From positions 4,402,001 through 4,466,000 of the forward strand of contig JBLDXI010000013.1 in NCBI GenBank assembly GCA_047495785.1: a DNA stretch of 64,000 nt, given 5' to 3'. The notes under the pieces are model-generated. The model saw only the letters and a list, made by a program, of their open reading frames with translations, was not told the DNA's origin and did no database searches. Numbering within the stretch: position 1 is the stretch's first letter; each line of letters begins with the position of its first letter. Origin of the DNA: Lepidodermella squamata (Eukaryota; Animalia; Gastrotricha). The position numbers and the translations under genes were made by a program. Positions 4,748 to 19,100 of this stretch are shown here, piece after piece.

Positions 4748-5122
4748 ATATCCGTTTTTTTATTTTCCGGAAAATAAAATGAGACCATTTTTGAACAGAC
4801 TTGTGTCTTGTTACCTGACAGAAAAAGTAAGAAAAATAAGGAGAGAACGTTTCAAGGTAAACTGCGGATTTTTTCGAACTAGAAGCTGCGACCAAATATC
4901 AAATATCGAACTATTAGGAAAACGAAAACTTTCCAGGTCAAATCAAAATTGCGGGTTTGATATTTCTCGAAATATTTGTCTAGAATGAATCTCAGAATTC
5001 CCACATGCACTCAATTTACCTGCAAGGACCGCAAATTTCTTCCCAGCTCATATTGCCTAATGTTGAGCTAATCAGCGAGTCGGTGAGCAAAGACTGCACA
5101 ATTTTTTTGAAATATTTATGGG

Positions 5123-5507
5123 TCCAAATATTTGCACCACTATAAAAATGTGGTTCCAGCACTAAATTAAGGAGTCCTGGTCTTTGCTATTTCGGCGTTT
5201 TCGTTTTTTGATCGAAACTGATGCCCTCTCTGAACCTAGGCTATTTTTTATTTTAACATTGTGCCCTAAGCTACGCGGAAAAATTATCGATGTTGGGTTC
5301 CAAGACGGCTGATATCGAGAAAATCACTGATGTTTAATATCGATACTTGGAATCGATATCGGCTCTACAAAAGGAAGTATAATTCGTAACCTGACCGCTC
5401 ATAGCGCAAATTACGCGAAATATGAAGGTCTATCAGTTGGGCATGATAACACAAAATTTGAGATTATAGTGGAGACTCGAAAAACTATATCTTTGGGAAA
5501 TCTAGTC
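5123..5507 (+). repeat. Dispersed repeat family, copy B
   Basis: Colinear with 1037-1420. Confidence 0.8.
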
Positions 5508-6202
5508 TCAACTTTAGTCCTGGAACCGTTAATTTACGGTGCGCACCTGGCTCACCCAGCATTTTCTGCTCTTTCATAGATTTTTTTCAAAGAGACAATT
5601 TTTTCATAGATTTACCCGAGCAGGCCTATTAGGGATCTCCGTAGAACCTTTTACCGATAGGGAAACTGGGTTGTTAATAGAGACTGGGGATTATCGTATT
5701 CAGAGGCTTATCGGCATTCGGTCAAAGGTCAAAGTCTGCTTAAAATATGTCTACAATTAGAATAAAATTTGAAGAAGCTTCCATTGAAAAATGTAGGGTT
5801 CGTTTGATCGATACTCGATAAATTAATGGGGCTTCGAAATCATCCGGCTTCTATGCATTTTTGACCGAAATTCGGAGAGCTCATTGGCGGATCTAGGAAA
5901 GTAAGGTTCGTTTAGACATGACGTTATTAAACCTAAAACCCAAGTAATTGAATTTGTTTTAGGCATTACCCCGAGTTGAAAGTGCGTTTCGTAGGGTCGG
6001 CCCCGTGACAGAATTACAATGTACAAAATGATTAAATAATTTACACGCGTCCATTCACGAGAACGCGCTTGCGCAATAAAAACACGCGCCCGACTTTTTC
6101 GCGCGTAAAAAAATCTCAGACTTTCTACTACCTATATTGGCCGTATCAATCAAACGTGAAATTGTATTTTTAATTTTAATTTTAAATTAAACAGCTCTTC
6201 AA

Positions 6203-9200
6203 ATGTTCACGCTTTGGAAGAGCTTCTTCATTCTAGCGCTGGTCTCTGTCGAGACTTTGACCGATTCATTGCCATCGGTGAAAGTGTCCCCCGACTGCTG
6301 CGAGCCTGATCTCGTTTTCATCCTCCAGCAAACCTGCTTCTCGAGCACTGACCTCGACGTCTACCTGAAGCCGTTTATGATCAATGCGATCGCGGCCGCT
6401 GATTACCTGCCCTGTAACGACGTCCGTGGTGCCGTTGTCGAGTACGGCGCTGAGCCGCTGGTCCGCTTTAAGCTGGACGACTACCGCCCGACGTCGGCTC
6501 TCATCGGCAAAATCGCTCGATTCCAGCTGTCGGAGAACCTCGGCGATCCTGCTCGCATGGCCCTCGCCCTGGAAGCGGCTCGCGATGAAGTGCTGACCCC
6601 TGAATATGGCTACCGTCCCAATTCTCCAACTCACGTCATCGTTGTCGTATGTCCTGTTTTAAATTTTATTAAATTAAATTTTTTTAAATTTTTTCAAATT
6701 TTAATGAAAATTTAGAAATTAAATTAAAATCGGGACGTGATTTATATTTTTAGGCTGACACTGATCCGGTCGATTTCGAGCGTGCTATGCAAGCTTCGAA
6801 GGATGTTCAAAAGTTGGCGACCGTCGTCATTGTTGGTGTCGGAAACAGCTACAGCCGCGACAAGTTCCGCGCTCTCGCCACCTCGGACAAGTTCTACTTC
6901 CACGTATTTCAAGAAATTTTGTCATTTTTCAGCGGATTGAAAGTTATTTTTTTCATAGATTAAAGATGCCGAGGGCTTGGCTCACGTTTGCGATCTCCTG
7001 AAAGGCGACTTCTGCCCGACAACCACGACAACATTACGTAATTTTTATGATTAATTTGAGAATTAATTAATGTATTTAACTCGATATTTACAGCCACGAC
7101 AAGTAAGAACTGAATACCCATTTGGTGACTCAATTTTTATGAAAAATTACAGCCACCACGACTACTACGACTACAACTACGACTACAACCCCTAAAACAA
7201 GTAAGCTATTTTTGAAAATAAAATTTAGAAATATGATGAAATATTTTTTAGCGACTACTCCTACCACGACAACGACAACAACCACCGTGCCAGAGACTAG
7301 TGAGTATTTAAATAAAGTTAGTTCTGTACCTAGATTTTGTGCTCCAGCGACTACTGAGGCAACCACGACTGAGGCGACTACCACCGAGGCGACTACTACT
7401 GAGGCGACTACAACTACTACTACCCCCGAGACGAGTGGGAATTTTCCAAATATTTAGCATAAACATCTTAATTTCTCTATACATCTCTAGCCACAACGTC
7501 GACAACTACGACTACAACGACAACAACAACTCCCACTACGAGTAATTTTATGAATTTTTCAATCGTACAGATAATATTATTCAATTAATATTATATCAAG
7601 CCACCACTACAACGACAACACCTCCGCCGAGTGAGAAACCATTTTTCGGAATTTTTTGGATTTTTTGCAATTTTCAAAACTTACAGCGACTACGACTGAG
7701 ACTACGACTCAAGAAACAAGTAATTTTCAGATGGTTTTGAAATGGAAAATAGTATGCTTTTTGTAATTTCAGCGACCGAGGCTACTACCACGCCTACAAC
7801 GAGTAAAATTGTCAGGAAATGCCGTTAATTTCTTAAAATAATTGCGTTAGCCACGACCCCAACTACCACTACAACTACGACCCCAACTACGACTACTACT
7901 ACGACTCCGACTACCACAACCGAGTCAAGTAATATTCGAAGAAATATTTCAGGAATAAATAATTTGCATTCGACTCTTCATTATAGCGACTACGCCCACG
8001 ACAACGACGACTACCACCACCGAAGCGAGTAATATTTGAGATTGTAATTGAAAATCGGAATACTAATTTACTCTCTCCCTTTTAGCTACTACACCAACGA
8101 CAACTACTACCACTGAAGCCAGTAAGATTGGAGATTGCAATTGAACAACTTAAACTTGTAATTGGCGCTCCTTTTTAGCGACTACCCCAACGACAACTAC
8201 GACTACCACCACTGAAGCTAGTAATTACTTGACTTCTCATTTTCTTGGTTGAAATTTTACATACTTTTTCTATTTTAGCGACGACTCCGACAACCAGTAA
8301 TTCGAATGTATTTTCCTTCAAATTCTGAGACTGTTTATCCTTCAGCTACTACGACCACCACTACGACAACGACCCCTGAAACCAGTAATTCATAGATATT
8401 TTTAATGTGGAAAAGTTGCATTTTTTCTTGAATTTCAGCGACTACTGAGGCTACTACCACTCCAACCACGAGTAAGATTGCCAGGTAGCAATTGCGATTG
8501 GTTTGAGCCGAAAAATGATTTATTTAGCTACGACTCCTGAAACAACAACCACCACAACCGAAGCGACGACTACCACCACTACGACTGAAGCGACGACGAC
8601 TCCAACGACTACAACTGAAGCTAGTGAGTTTCGCATTCAGTGTATATTATAGTAACAATCTTCCTTTTCTATAGCAACGACTCCGACTACAAGTATTTGC
8701 GGTTCGAAGTTATTTTTCAGTCAACTGATTATTTTTGCTCGACAGCTACAACTCCGACTACTACAACTACGACTACGCCAACAAGTAAGTTCAAAGATTG
8801 TCTTTAGCCAGTTGACAATTTTTCCCGTTTTTCCATTGATTTTTTGGGATTTTATAATGTAATTTATGACTTGTTCAGCCACTACTACTACAACGCCGAC
8901 GACTACAACAAGTAAATATTTTATAATTAAAAATAATAGTTAAATAATTTTTTTTATTTTTAGCCACAACGCCAACTACCAGTAAGCTTCCGAGTGAAGA
9001 GATTTACACCTTTGCCGAAAATATTCATGCTGATCAATATCTCATAAAATCTTCCTTTCAGCCACAACTTCAACTACCACGCCCACTAGTGATTTCCACT
9101 TTCATTTAATTTTTAATTATTGAGTTGAATGATCGCTATATTTTAACAGCTACCACCACCATTACTGAAGCAACGACAACGACAACCAGTAAGAAAATGA

Positions 9201-11636
9201 GAAATTTAGATGGTACCTGTTCAAATTTCTTCTCACCTAGCCCCAACTACCACCCAGGCTACATCCACTGCTAGTTCAAGTAAGTTTTATTCATCCAAGG
9301 CCTTATAATGAATGTCTAACAAAACTGAAATTTGAACAGCTCTGCCTAACCCGACAACTCCGGCAGACAGTAAGAAAGCCTTATTACGCCCTTATTTTCT
9401 TTCAAAAAACTTTTGTTGCAGCTACCTCCACGCCAAGTAAATTTCGTTCTACCTTTCTAGCCCAGCTACGAAACAAGCGAAAGCCAGAGCTTTTGAAGTT
9501 TAGCGAAAAATCGGTAAAATCGAAATTAGGGGGTCGCGTGAGCTTTTTTGATGATTCGATTGATAATTATAATTATTTTTTAATTGGTTGTTGTATTTTT
9601 GCTATCTGAACAGCGACTACAACGGAGACTCAGCCAACGACAGTGCCCCCGCCGACTGACCTGTGCATGGCTTGTGCTCACCGTCGCAACCACAAGGACC
9701 ACTATGCTGATCCGACCGACTGCCACTTCTTCTACCAGTGCTTCTACTTCAACGAAACGTACGCTATCGGCATCCGCCGCCCATGCCCGCCGCACACTTT
9801 CTGGCATGAAGAAGTCCTTGGGGCAAGTTTTTCATAGAATATAAAATAAATTTCCGAATAAATGATCACAATTTCAAATTTAATTACCGCTTTATATGGG
9901 CAATCAGATTGAAAAATAATTAATTTAATTTAATTCGATTTCAATTTTAATTTTAATTTTTTGTTGAGTTTGCCCAAACTTTAGGGTTACAGCCTTGGAG
10001 ATCTAAAAAAATGGTTTTTCGAATTTCACGTTTTCCGTGCCGTTATCGATTTCAAGTATCGATTTTACAAATCAGTGATTTTTCCGATATTGAGAGTCTA
10101 TGGAGGGAACTCAGAGGCTTAGTCGGTATCATTTATCAACCAGGTAAAGAAGACAATTCGAGAGATTAAAATTCGTGAAAATTTGAAAATTTAAAAGTTT
10201 AGAACCCATTTTTCTGAAAATATATTTACTCGATTTAAATTCCTAAATTTCGAGGTTTTTCTTTAAAGTAATCCGTATGTGAACTTTTTCATTGTAACAG
10301 TGCCTGCTCGAGGGCGAAGTTCCGTGCACGGACATTTGCCGCAGCTTGGACTCTGTCGACGAGAAGAACTGCTACGGCGTCGCCGGGTCTTGCAACCAAT
10401 ACTTCGTATGCTCGAACACAGCCAGCCACGCCTTCTGCTGCCCGCCGAACACGCGCTTCAACAACGAAACTTGCGGCTGCGACGACGACCTGGAATGCAC
10501 GGCTCAATGCGTCCTGCCCGACAAGCCGCTGACGACCGAATTCCCGCCGGTCAAGGTGAACGACACGGTTTGCATCGACTCGTTCGGAACTACCCTCAGC
10601 AGCATCCCTGGCGAGCCGACCTACTACCTGGTCGTCGATAATTCTGACCCTGAAAAGGTTACCTACCAGCGCATGGCTTGCCCGTCCGAAACCACGTTCA
10701 ACGTCGATCTTTGCCGATGTGACGGTGAGGGCACCGTGACGTCGCCGGCCAACCCGAACCAATGCGTTTTGTGGATGCCGTTCGAGACGGATTTCAAGGA
10801 CCACTCTGTCTACAAGTTCACAACCTTCGCTTATGGAGACGGCAGCATGGACGCTAACGTTTCAGCCCACTCGAACACGACCGGCTCTTACCAATTCACG
10901 ATGGGCCGCATCGAAATTCCAGGCCTCAAGACGTTCGACTTCCAAGACAGCGCCACGTTCTGCCTGTTCTTCCGTTGCGAGAGCAGTAACGATACGGCGA
11001 ATGGTAACTACTCATGCGTGCTGCCAGGTGGTTTGTTGTCGAACAACAACGACTCGGCTCTCGTCGATTTCACGGTGCTGTTTGCGACGAATGGCGACAA
11101 CGGCAATTTCGATGCGCGTGTCCGTTTCTGGCACCCGTCCAGCAACAACTGGGTCGCGTCGAACGCCACGGTCACGGATGGCTGGAACCAGGCTTGCCTC
11201 ACCTACAACGGATCTCACGTCATCACCTACGTCAACAACGTAATTTTAAAATTTAAATTTTTTTAATTCATTTTCAAATTTCAAAAAAAAATTTAAATTT
11301 AAAATTTAATTTTTTTTTCATTTTTCTAAATTATTATTTGTTAACATGTTAAAAAATGTAAATATAGTTTTCTTTAGGAATTTCAGATTTTGAAAAAATT
11401 GAATTGAAATTTTTATTTTTTTGCAGAATGTTACCAATGTCTTCGAGACTGAAGGATCGTTCGCTATTGGCCACTGCCCGTACACGCTCGGCAACGACCA
11501 GTACTACGGCAGCTTCGCAGGCCACATGGACGACGTGCTCATCTGCCCGTTCCCGTTCACCGCCGAGGAAGTCAGCTACCACTACTCGGCTAACTATCAA
11601 TACTTCGTCCAGAGTGGCTACATCCCAGCAAATTAA
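6203..11636 (+). CDS. Secreted VWA + Thr-rich mucin spacer + ~3x chitin-binding (CBM14) + LamG/ConA-like protein (Pif/BMSP-like architecture), 31 coding exons
   Basis: Signal peptide, then VWA exons 6203-6646, 6754-6903 and 6959-7037 (DLVFIL..VRGAVVEY..ALEAARDEVL..GYRPN..VIVV..VIVGVG). Next come 25 micro-exons (7094-9436), CBM14/LamG exons 9614-9822 and 10301-11239 (YADPTDCHFFYQC..CPPHTFW; CPPNTRFN..C; CPSETTFN..C), and last exon 11427-11636 (FAGHMDDV). Confidence 0.9.
7094..9436 (+). other. Array of 25 symmetric phase-1 micro-exons encoding a 326-aa Thr/Pro/Glu-rich mucin spacer
   Basis: Exons: 7094-7102, 7153-7200, 7252-7299, 7348-7434, 7491-7541, 7601-7630, 7687-7719, 7773-7802, 7851-7928, 7987-8028, 8086-8121, 8179-8220, 8279-8296, 8346-8384, 8439-8471, 8528-8623, 8675-8692, 8746-8784, 8879-8911, 8964-8981, 9062-9088, 9150-9188, 9241-9279, 9340-9369, 9422-9436. 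Each has the form AG|C...A|GT and a length divisible by 3. Confidence 0.9.
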
Positions 11637-11884: not shown

Positions 11885-14011
11885 ATGAGAATTTCAGCGA
11901 CTTTATTGCTTTTGGGTTCAGCTTTCGTACTCGGAGCTGTTTTGGCGATGGATACAGCTGCCGAGTCGAAGACTCTAGTCAGGCGAGCCCTCAGCGAAAG
12001 TACCGAGAGTGACTCGAGCGAAAGCGGCCAAGTCGCTCCGAATTTGCTTCAACGCAAGCCTTACAAGCCGACGAAGAAGACTACAACCAGAACTACCACA
12101 ATTATGACCTCAACCCTTGTCCAAGGTTCGTTGAGAAATTGAAGTGTTTTTTGTGAAATTACGAAGTTTTTTATAGGCACCCTACCGACTACCACCCGCC
12201 GAACCACGAGGCAAACCACTACTAGGCGGCCAACGACCACGACTCGCCGCACGACTACCCGTGCTACTACCCGAATTCAGTGAGCTGGAAAATTTGAGAC
12301 AAATTTCAAAAATTAGGTTATTTCTTTCAGGAACACTCCTCCGCAACCGACTACACCCCGCAAGACCACCCACCGCCCTAAGACTACTCACCGTCCGAAG
12401 ACTACAACCACGACTGTCCGAATTTCGAACCCGATCCCCACCCCTGAGTAAGTGTCAAAAATTGAAGGTTATTTCGCATAATTTTTCGCAATTTTTTCCA
12501 ATTTTAGGGATGTTTGCATGAGCTGCGCAATGAGGCGTAACCAAAAGGACTACTACGCCAACCCGGCCGATTGCCACACCTTCTACCACTGCTTCTTCTA
12601 CAACGAAACTACAGCCTATGGCATCCTCCAATCATGCCCGCCCGGCACCTTCTGGAGCGATGACGTCCTGTCCTGCCTGCCCGAAGGCCGAACTCCGTGT
12701 TTCGACCTGTGCCAGAACGACACGGTTGCTGCTGGCGGCTGCTACGGTTCGCCGACCAACTGCGCGGAATTCTACATCTGCTCCAACGGTGGTAGCGCCC
12801 CGTTCTGCTGCCCGCCTAACACCCGTTTCGAACAGGCCACTTGCACCTGCATCGCCGATGACACCTGCCTTGATATCTGCACCCTGCCTACCCCGATTCC
12901 GACAACTGTCGCCTCACCGACCCAGATCAACGCTACCAGTAAGTACTTTTCATCCACCCTAAATTTATTAAATAAAAAATTCTCTGAATTTAAATAGCTT
13001 GCGTCGATTCGTTTGGAGTCACCCTGGGCGCTATTGCCGGTAGCCCTGGCCAGTTCTTAATTTTGGACTTCTCCGACCCGGAGAATCCCGGCCAACACGT
13101 GACCTCATGCGCCCCTGGCACCCAGTTCGACGTCTCAGTCTGCCGTTGCGATATCGAAATCTCGCTCCCCGTCCTACCTGTTGGTCGCCAGTGCTCGCTG
13201 TGGCTGCCCTTCGACACCGACCTCGAAGATCGTTCGATTGAGAAATTCAACACCTACCCGATTGGTAACGCCATTTTGGACACCACCGTCGCTGCCCATG
13301 GTACTGGCTCGCTCTACGTCAATGGTGGTCACCTTGAAATTCCTGGCCTCAAGAACTACGACTGGCAACGCGAAGGCTCCTGGTGCCTCTCTTTCAGGTT
13401 AATTTTTTATTATGAATTTTTCAAAAATTCCCAAAATATTTTTTAATTTTTTTTTTATTAATTTAAAATGAATTTAAAATTTCGTAAAATATGGATATTT
13501 TTTGAATATTTTTAGGTGTGAATTCGGAACCAATCCTCCCTACACCTGCACGAACAACGCCGGCCTTTTCTCGAACAACAACAACGCTTCAATGACCGAT
13601 TACTCCATCATCATGTCGACCCAGCCCACCGATAACTTCGCCGGCCGCATGCGATTCCGCGCCCCTGCTGGCAGCGCCACGGTCACCAGCGCCCTGAACC
13701 CGGCCACCACCGGCTGGAACCAAGTTTGCATGATCTACAACGGTGCCACGATTCAGACCTACATCAACGGTTCTCCTTCGACTTCGGTGCCAGCTAGCGG
13801 CTCTGTCGCCATTGGCCACTGCCCGTACGTTGTCGGTTCTGACCAGACTTTCGGCGATTTCATCGGTCACATCGACGACGTCCTGGCTTGCCCGTTCGCC
13901 CTGACCCCGGAGGAGGTCACCGCTCACTACCAGGGCAACACTGGTTTCATGAGCGCCCAGGGCATGCTGCCGAGTGGTCTGGGCCTAGTCCACTCATACA
14001 TTCATCACTAA
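11885..14011 (+). CDS. Secreted basic Thr/Arg-rich spacer + ~3x CBM14 + LamG protein; tandem paralogue of 6203-11636 lacking VWA
   Basis: Exons 11885-12125, 12177-12279, 12331-12447, 12508-12938, 12998-13397 and 13516-14011 splice in frame. The protein aligns colinearly with the upstream gene (YANPADCHTFYHCF, CCPPNTRF, LWLPFDTD, LEIPGLK, AIGHCPY, FIGHIDDV). Confidence 0.9.
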
Positions 14012-16129: not shown

Positions 16130-19100
16130 TCAGGCTAGATAGTGGTACAAACTGGCGTTCTCCTTGTCGCGCTCCATGTACTCGCGCTCGATGAGGCTCT
16201 CGATGCGCTTCTTCACGTCGGCCGCCTTCAGCGAGAACTGCAGCTGGCTGTACAGCTCGGCGAGCAGCTGGTTGTGCGGCAGCGACTTGCGCATCTTCAT
16301 TATGCGCACGATCGCCGCGTCGATTTGGTACTGCCGGTCCTGGAACACCCGCTCCTCTGTTTCTTCTTGCTCCTCGGGCTATAGAAAAAAAAATTCAAAA
16401 AATTGACGAAGCAGTAAAATATTTATTATTCAAAATTATTCAGATGTCCAACTAGCGGAATCGGTTTCTTTCGAAAAAGATAAATGGCGCATGGTTGTTG
16501 TAGGAGATTGAACTCTCTACTCGATTGAAAATTATGAATTCTATACAAAAAGCAGAATCCTCGACTGTGGGGGTGGGTGAGGATCATTCTTCGCCTGCCT
16601 TCGCCCTCTTCAAAACCGGAAACGTTACACGACACTCAGTCCCGAAGAGGAAAAATAAAACGATTATTATAATTATACATATGTATAGAAAAATAATCAG
16701 GTTTCCAATGCTCAAGCAATGATCGACTTTCCGGTTGGAAAATTATTTTGCGATTCTAATTTCTGATTCATTCAACTTTCCCAATGCAAGTTTCCCAATG
16801 CAAGTTTACCAATGTGTAAAACTCACTCCAGGTGAGCTATTATTACGCGTAAACAAGCGGCTCACGTCTTAGAGAAAACAACACGCGACAAACAGGGCGC
16901 GCGGGAGGTCGTAAAGCTGATTAACCACTTGTTACTTATCATCCCCCTATAAAACTTGAAAACAGTTAACATATCATACTTATGACCCTGACGTAGAGCA
17001 TCCCGCTCTGAATTCGACTATTTTTGGGTTTTTCCTACTTTGCCAACCACGTGAAATTGTAGAAAATATTCGGCAAATACAGAATTATAGAGTAGTTTTG
17101 GGCTATCGAATTGACCTGGGTCATCGCTAGACTGAGAAACTGGCGATTTTTTATACCAAATTTGTCCAGGAAGCATAGTTAGATGTGTCGAATAAGAACC
17201 CAGAAGTGCCGGAGTTGGGTCGCAGCGGCCGAACATAGGACGTTGCCGAATTAGGGCATCTTATAGCAAATCAGGAGTTGAACAGAATTACTGCGCGAAG
17301 AGCGAGCGCGAATTCGGCGATGGCCGCGGCATAGCCCAACGCAAATTTATCAAAAACTGCAAGCCGAAGTCGGCCGAAATGCGACGCAATTAGGTTAACA
17401 CCGAGATTTTACCAAGACAGCGAACAACGGCGTGGAGGGCAATAACAGCCGCTACAACCGTGCCGCGCGTTGTTGTCACCTTGCATTTTGGCGGTTTTGT
17501 CACCTTATCATCACCATCGAAGATCATACAGATAGCGATTTGCTACTGCAAGAGGCCGGTCAGCAGATCAAGAAGCATACGGCGAGATACCGCTATCGAC
17601 GCCGCTATCAAGAAAATTACGGCGAAATACTCGAAGAAGCGCGCGGCTCTTATTAACGACGATGATGGCTGTTAAAAACTTAGCATTGAATACGCTTATT
17701 CGTTTTGAGTACTATTTTCATGACATGAATCGTCTAGTATAATCGCCATAATAAGGTTAATGAATAGCGCAATAAAATGACAAATGACACGATGCAAGCT
17801 TCCCCAATAATAAGCAATTTTGTTACTAATGGTTCTGGGTAAACTTGAATAAAATCTGCAGATTGGGAAGCGGATTAGAAGGAAATGCGGGCGTAACGGC
17901 TCAATTGCATTTTGGAGTGAGTTTTACACATTGGTAAACTTGCATTGGGAAACTTGCATTGGGAAAGTTGAAGACACCTAATTTCTGATTGGCAAATGGT
18001 AAAATTAGAAAACGTAATAATAATTATTTAAATATTCAATTAAATTATTTAAAAATTCAATGTCGCAATATTCCACTAATTGAGGCACAAGTGCAGGATC
18101 TGCATAACTTCACAGCAGCAAATCTAAAATTTACCGATTTCCACGGTAAATTTCGAAATTCCCCGAAAATTTCCCGGCAGCCCGGATCTGCACCCAGATG
18201 CTGCACTCCTGAATTGAGGCTGCGAGTAAAAAATAACTTTGAAGTACCTACCGGGGAGCGGTACAATTTTGACAACTCCCAACGCTTTTTTCTAAATAAA
18301 AAATAAAAAAAATCAGGGTTTTTGGATCCGGTAAATCTGATGACACCGTTAGAAACCCCTTCACCTGGCGCCATAGAGAACGAAGTGATCAGAGGGGACA
18401 CTTGCACATGCGTACTGGCAACGCATTAATTTTAATTATTTTTCAAAAAGTGCACCTTAAAAGATGCAAAACTGGTTTTACTTTTGAACAGTTAAAATCT
18501 CCATTGTCTTGATCGGCGTTTTTTTTTAATTTTCATTCAGCCATCAAAAATTTGCACCCTATTGGATTTCGATGCCGATTAGTAGAAATGTGAGCCAATT
18601 CTTCCTCTCTATAATCAGTATCTATAATCTCCATAATATCGTGAAAAAATCAGCGCTTGGGCAAAATCGTGAGATTTTGATGTCGCCTTCAAAATCAACG
18701 AACGAGGAGTCGAAAGATAACAAAAATAGGTTGCTAGCAATCAGGGTTGCTGAGAAAATTGTGTTCAAAGTTCAAGGGTGAAAGATTGCTATAATGGGTG
18801 ATTATTTCTCAAAAAATATATCCTCAGATTGTTTGATGCCATCGTGTTCAGCGTTCAAAATTAGACCCTCATCCGACAGTTTAAAACCACAAGGTAGTCG
18901 CACACCTTGCGAAAAATGAAAGTTAAGTCAGCGCTGTCCTCATTCAGGACAAACTGAATCCAGAAATAAATCTTTTGTTCTAGAAGTTTGAAGTTTTTAC
19001 AACTGCAAGAGAACATTACGCTCGCAATGATCAGATTTTTTCTTAAATTTTAAATTCATACTTGTGCTTGGGTAAGTAGCTTCGACCCATTATCAAACAC

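Follow-up and report, generated by a model that had tools for sequence, protein, structure and literature searches.

A gene of the gastrotrich Lepidodermella squamata encodes a threonine-rich linker that is split over 25 very short exons, referred to here as cassettes, at 7094-9436 on the forward strand of the 64,000-nucleotide stretch that was analysed (the window; contig JBLDXI010000013.1, positions 4,402,001 to 4,466,000). The linker lies between a VWA domain and a chitin-binding region. The exon array is confirmed as real, and in both of the RNA studies that cover it the dominant transcript holds all cassettes in order. We think it probable that the array encodes a rod, that it is an intron-bearing tandem array spliced mostly constitutively, and that its length changes by allele and over evolution. 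A first-pass annotation, made from the letters of the DNA, had described the array and proposed that exon skipping tunes the length of a mucin spacer. The RNA data do not support such tuning, as the RNA joints listed keep the cassettes in order, rare or stage-specific forms aside. The gene model has 31 exons, runs from the ATG at 6203 to the stop codon at 11636, and forms a single open frame of 1002 amino acids:

6203..6646, + strand: exon 1, with the signal peptide and the greater part of VWA (RNA joint 6646>6754)
6754..6903, + strand: exon 2, remainder of the VWA domain, phase 0-0 (gene model, RNA contigs)
6959..7037, + strand: exon 3, end of the VWA domain and start of the linker; last letter C, phase 1 (gene model, RNA contigs)
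7094..9436, + strand: 25 symmetric phase-1 cassettes for a 326-residue mucin-type linker, 75% threonine (gene model; RNA joints and the letters between them)
9614..9822, + strand: constant exon with the linker end and the first CBM14 (Pfam CBM_14, E 1.9e-05); first letter C; followed by a GC-AG intron
10301..11239, + strand: exon with the second CBM14, a CBM-like cysteine repeat and the N-terminal part of a LamG/ConA-like domain (Pfam; homologues 29-46% identical)
11427..11636, + strand: last exon, remainder of LamG and the stop codon (gene model; RNA joint 11239>11427)

When the exon lengths given by the first-pass annotation are walked from 7094, every cassette (25/25) has AG directly before it and GT directly after it, starts with C, ends with A and has a length divisible by 3, so that any subset of cassettes keeps the frame. 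The cassettes measure 9-96 nt and add up to 978 nt. All 26 array introns are in phase 1, and 23 of them are 48-61 nt long, the remaining three being 80, 94, and 177 nt; the four introns of the globular part are all in phase 0. The first junction codon of the array is CCN (proline), since exon 6959-7037 ends in C, and the other 25 junctions, up to the C that opens the exon at 9614, read A|C and give threonine. These features had all been described correctly, and the gene model and the Pfam matches agree with the VWA and chitin-binding context and the phase-0 globular introns that had been proposed. The A|C context had also been set against the usual AG|G: A|C is indeed found throughout, with the exonic letter before each cassette donor always A, but AG|G is not the rule at this locus anyway, occurring in only about 2 of its 10 other introns. 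With 978 nt out of 3009, the array makes up 33% of the coding sequence; a length above 36 nt is found in 12 of the 25 cassettes. GC content is ~41-43%. No second chain of threonine micro-exons was found within the window.

Three sequencing runs cover the stretch. Two of them, X1 and X3, come from different studies and look like spliced RNA, and X2 looks like DNA; among the runs are an RNA run of 2014 and a DNA run of 2024 that carry the same species label. The joints listed are the best 15 of 32, the remaining 17 being less supported. All RNA joints listed, from X1 and X3, match the predicted boundaries, and every one of them links neighbouring cassettes. One X1 contig of 548 nt, which runs from exon 1 to cassette 7, equals 21+150+79+9+48+48+87+51+30+25 exactly, and one X3 contig also has the length of the all-inclusive model, to the base. 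The cassettes of 9, 15, and 18 nt are present in the main contigs of both RNA studies, and at the loose ends of contigs cassette 2 continues into 3, 12 into 13 and then 14, 19 into 20, and 22 into 23. Contig joints, loose ends, and lengths thus all fit an all-inclusive dominant transcript. No skip joint was seen among the joints listed in the two RNA sets, which are contigs in which rare forms would be invisible. Three apparent skips (7037>7149, 8623>8742, and 9369>9614) were rejected, because the letters in between are those of cassettes 1, 17, and 25. An apparent skip from cassette 12 to 16, at the X3 loose end 8220, was rejected as well, as the end reads cassette 13 with one substitution and then cassette 14. 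The array introns 7201-7251 and 7300-7347 are divisible by 3 and free of stop codons, and their retention would add 16-17 in-frame residues; no retention of either was seen in the RNA contigs.

Length variation was found inside cassettes.

8439..8471, + strand: cassette 15 (33 nt), in place of which each RNA run has, at partial depth, a 24-nt in-frame form

The 24-nt form has depths of 53 and 43, against 74-98 and 62-80 for its neighbours, and the DNA run shows about half depth (37) at the reference cassette 15. The 24-nt form is absent as a separate exon between 8385 and 8527 of the window. The simplest reading is that it is probably a second allele. In the DNA run, 6 nt are also missing from cassette 2, at 7176, and there are many substitutions, some of them common to the RNA runs. 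The length variation that we see therefore looks inherited rather than splice-switched.

The array bears traces of its own duplication:

7687..7906, + strand: duplicated block of cassettes 7-9 with their introns (blastn, 69% identity with 8352-8586, cassettes 14-16)
7886..8224, + strand: tandem exon-plus-intron units of ~93 bp, cassettes 10-12 (93-bp unit in TRF; blastn of 7886-8125 against 7989-8224, 70%)

Comparison of introns stripped of their splice signals shows a relationship between introns 11 and 12, the ones ahead of cassettes 11 and 12 (z 6.1, 71% identity), and likewise between introns 8 and 15 (z 4.1) and between 9 and 16 (z 4.2); these last two pairs are adjacent and flank cassettes 8 and 15, which are near-identical. 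No pair of control introns rose above z 3 in 125 comparisons. Copying or losing an exon-plus-intron unit leaves the reading frame intact only when the unit is symmetric, and each copy takes over the phase and the junction letters of its parent. Uniform phase 1 and A|C junctions are thus expected even if no cassette is ever skipped. By chance, a uniform phase would have a probability of (1/3)^25, ~1e-12, if phases were independent, which the cassettes are not, since some arose by duplication. Given phase 1 and 75% threonine, 25 threonine junctions would have a chance of ~7e-4 if independent, and this improbability points to descent or sequence bias.

The predicted protein has the layout signal peptide–VWA–poly-Thr–CBM14–LamG, which is that of molluscan PifN; the protein would work like a Pif-type matrix protein, as a putative member of that clade at most. 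Pfam scans were run exon by exon, and the joined model was translated and compared locally with a neighbouring paralogue. The VWA match (PF00092, E 5.8e-08) is over the cut-off. Two CBM14 matches follow, at 25.1 and 21.1 bits (cut-off 22.1). The Laminin_G_3 match to a partial exon (E 0.0026) is under the cut-off, and a full-length homologue, P0001 (46% identical), is a clear Laminin_G_3 match. In the VWA domain (6300-6340, + strand) the metal-binding D-x-S-x-S (MIDAS) motif is degenerate, and relatives retain part of it only; the domain is probably metal-independent. Of the 350 residues of the linker, 256 are threonine and one is basic; the linker is mildly acidic, and with this composition it is probably O-glycosylated. 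No molluscan homologue was retrieved by sequence: a word-index protein search with exon 10301-11239 gave no match, the exhaustive search turned up a family of relatives, 29-46% identical, from marine and freshwater metagenomes, and the P0009 and profile searches returned metagenome relatives only. The P0009 structural search placed a molluscan VWA+CBM14 cluster as a neighbour at low TM, and the ESM Atlas gave weak LamG leads only.

The relatives encode their linkers differently. The linker lacks introns in five genomic VWA-linker-CBM14 genes (L002, L004, L005, L006, and L010) from a related compact-genome marine animal. Two phase-0 introns, one at the VWA end and one inside LamG, are common to L005 and the L. 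squamata gene, and the threonine-rich linker of L005, ~185 amino acids long, lies in one exon, with an uninterrupted threonine-rich frame of 604 nt; a gap of Ns in L005 appears to be an overlap artefact, as the same peptide is found on both sides. Because the linkers of these relatives are free of introns, the array can be regarded as a gain specific to the lineage or to the gene. Two JGI metagenome scans yielded no loci of a close-species orthologue in which cassettes could be counted.

Taken together, these data suggest the following model. The gene may encode a secreted PifN-like matrix glycoprotein, a function that we propose from the domains. Its CBM14 foot, together with LamG, would anchor the protein to chitin, and the VWA head would be presented at the end of a glycosylated threonine rod of ~350 residues. 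In this lineage the rod would have acquired a phase-1 intron and then grown by tandem duplication of exon-plus-intron units and by in-exon indels of Thr or EAT units. Keeping the frame would restrict duplication and loss to symmetric units, and cassettes would inherit phase 1 and the A|C threonine junction. Splicing would be mostly constitutive, the main mRNA holding all cassettes, and length would vary in the manner of an intron-bearing variable number tandem repeat. The same symmetry would also make occasional mis-splicing of exons of 9-18 nt harmless.

Several points weigh against this model. Most array introns are mutually dissimilar, and only about 6 of the 26 can be traced to duplication. 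The RNA data are assembled contigs, from which rare forms are dropped, and their source is probably whole adults. The canonical array joints 7719>7773, 8981>9062, and 9088>9150 are not directly seen among the joints listed. By our own count, 15-16 of the 17 less-supported joints would be accounted for by the expected canonical joints and three joints of the DNA run. The 24-nt cassette 15 is known from RNA only, and glycosylation, chitin binding, and location are predictions. One alternative is that regulated or stochastic skipping produces a ladder of different spacer lengths in a single animal, so that the linker acts as a molecular ruler. Each of the 25 cassettes is neutral to the reading frame and has a fixed residue at its junction, the exonic donor context is weak, and there are precedents in the schistosome micro-exon genes (MEGs), SmPoMuc, and the frog mucin FIM-C.1. 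Set against this are the lack of any skip joint among those listed in the two RNA sets, the inclusion of even the smallest cassettes, and the length of the introns, as introns of ~50 nt would be expected to favour intron definition and constitutive splicing. We therefore consider a ladder of this kind unlikely. A more specific form of the idea, that skipping is controlled in cells or stages outside both contig sets (such as eggs, juveniles, or gland cells), that splicing sets the distance between VWA and the chitin anchor, and that several Pif-like paralogues behave alike, seems to us rather doubtful.

Two further explanations concern the introns themselves. Many of them could have arisen independently, by intronisation of or insertion into DNA coding for Thr, Ser, and Ala, as their main origin: a Ser codon provides A|GT, and an A-ending codon followed by an Ala codon provides AG|C, which together give phase-1 A|C introns. 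The mutual dissimilarity of ~20 of the 26 introns would fit, as would a phase-1 A|C intron of its own in the paralogue, but only 9 of the 26 intron lengths are divisible by 3, and the AT-rich introns retain no trace of ACN. Moreover, short introns diverge fast, so missing similarity is weak evidence. We regard this origin as improbable. The first-pass annotation had offered as a fallback that splicing is constitutive and that the introns break up an unstable ACN repeat. Its first half fits the RNA. As to the second, retention of introns to limit slippage or unequal crossing-over could be expected in a linker that is 75% threonine, and cassettes do contain in-frame indels. However, the four threonine codons are well mixed (88/58/53/45), the array itself grew by duplication, and the single-exon linker of L005 indicates that a long ACN linker can last with no introns in it. 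A repeat-breaking role is thus weakened, and of the explanations considered here it is the least probable. A mostly constitutively spliced tandem array remains the explanation that we prefer.

The surroundings of the array show some additional features. An AT-rich tract ending in CAG (6160-6194, + strand) lies 8 nt ahead of the start codon and is a possible intron of the 5' untranslated region or a trans-splice acceptor. One RNA contig carries 44 extra nt at its 5' end, which are unplaced, the stretch 6160-6194 being masked. The GC-AG intron 9823-10300 has indirect support from RNA contigs that end at 9821, and it holds part of a very high-copy repeat (depth in the DNA run up to 40,000) related to the elements at 1014-1480 and 5100-5557. 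The gene is followed by its paralogue:

11885..14011, + strand: tandem paralogue of 595 amino acids without a VWA domain, 45% identical over the CBM-LamG part

This paralogue has a basic Thr/Lys/Arg linker and only three introns, which are not symmetric (phases 1, 2, and 2); its separate phase-1 A|C intron, 12939-12997, lies in a short threonine hinge. In the related marine species the VWA-CBM gene L006 (1135-4403) adjoins a bestrophin gene, and in L009 (693-3123) exons of a trypsin domain come after another CBM-LamG homologue, which suggests a protease fusion. Further along the window, 16170-16380 (- strand) is the last exon of a cullin gene, which we take to be cullin-4-like. Perfect inverted repeats of 60 bp with 14-bp tandem units inside (16771-16830 and 17913-17972) enclose ~1.1 kb, probably a DNA transposon.

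Multi-exon mucin domains and the idea of tuning them by splicing are already known; what appears to be new is such an array in a Pif-like gene. We found no report in the literature of a micro-exon-split linker in Pif or Pif-like genes, and none on chitin synthase in Gastrotricha or on spliced peritrophin mucins. The array looks built for combinatorial splicing yet is spliced in full in these data, which calls for caution in concluding from exon symmetry that exons are skipped. It also represents a lineage-specific proliferation of introns within a mucin linker that relatives encode in a single exon. If regulated skipping were true after all, the gene would offer a directly testable case of a splice-set spacer in an extracellular matrix.

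PifN has a poly-Thr stretch between VWA and the chitin-binding part, plus a complete LG domain (PMC11291548). The L. squamata protein would share with molluscan Pif/BMSP and PifN the signal peptide, the single VWA, the long poly-Thr insert, the CBM14 repeats, and a complete LamG (PMC11291548). Unlike Pif/BMSP, it is without the acidic/basic Pif80-type insert, and its host is a microscopic and probably non-mineralising animal. A PifN-type architecture in such an animal bears on the role that the layout of shell-matrix proteins had before shells.

On the side of exon structure, chicken Muc13 has its mucin PTS domain spread over many short exons, and splice control of its length was proposed in 2006 (PMC1552070). 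The gene described here likewise spreads a threonine-rich domain over many short exons, but the Muc13 exons are near-identical 20-residue repeats in a transmembrane SEA mucin, whereas here the cassettes are diverged, span 3-32 codons and belong to a predicted secreted protein of chitin-binding type. In SmPoMuc a 27-bp exon is repeated along with its introns as a unit of ~1 kb that is >94% identical (PMC2576457). A near-identical unit per exon, as in the Muc13 and SmPoMuc type, is not seen in our array, which has local duplications only. In MEGs ~75-80% of the coding region lies in exons of 6-36 bp (PMC5825161); our gene has short symmetric exons in a predicted secreted protein, but even the whole array covers just a third of its coding sequence. 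It thus resembles SmPoMuc (PMC2576457) and the MEGs (PMC5825161) in having short exons in a mucin-like protein, those of the MEGs being symmetric too, and differs from SmPoMuc in that its units are ~100 bp and diverged, and from both in that the extensive transcript variation of those genes was not seen in the main contigs of the two RNA runs. Finally, the Xenopus integumentary mucin FIM-C.1, which is reported to be polymorphic through alternative splicing, places threonine-rich mucin segments between cysteine-rich binding modules (PMC7177656). The L. squamata gene has the same general plan, with CBM14 where FIM-C.1 has TFF modules and, as far as observed, with all of its cassettes spliced in rather than alternatively spliced.

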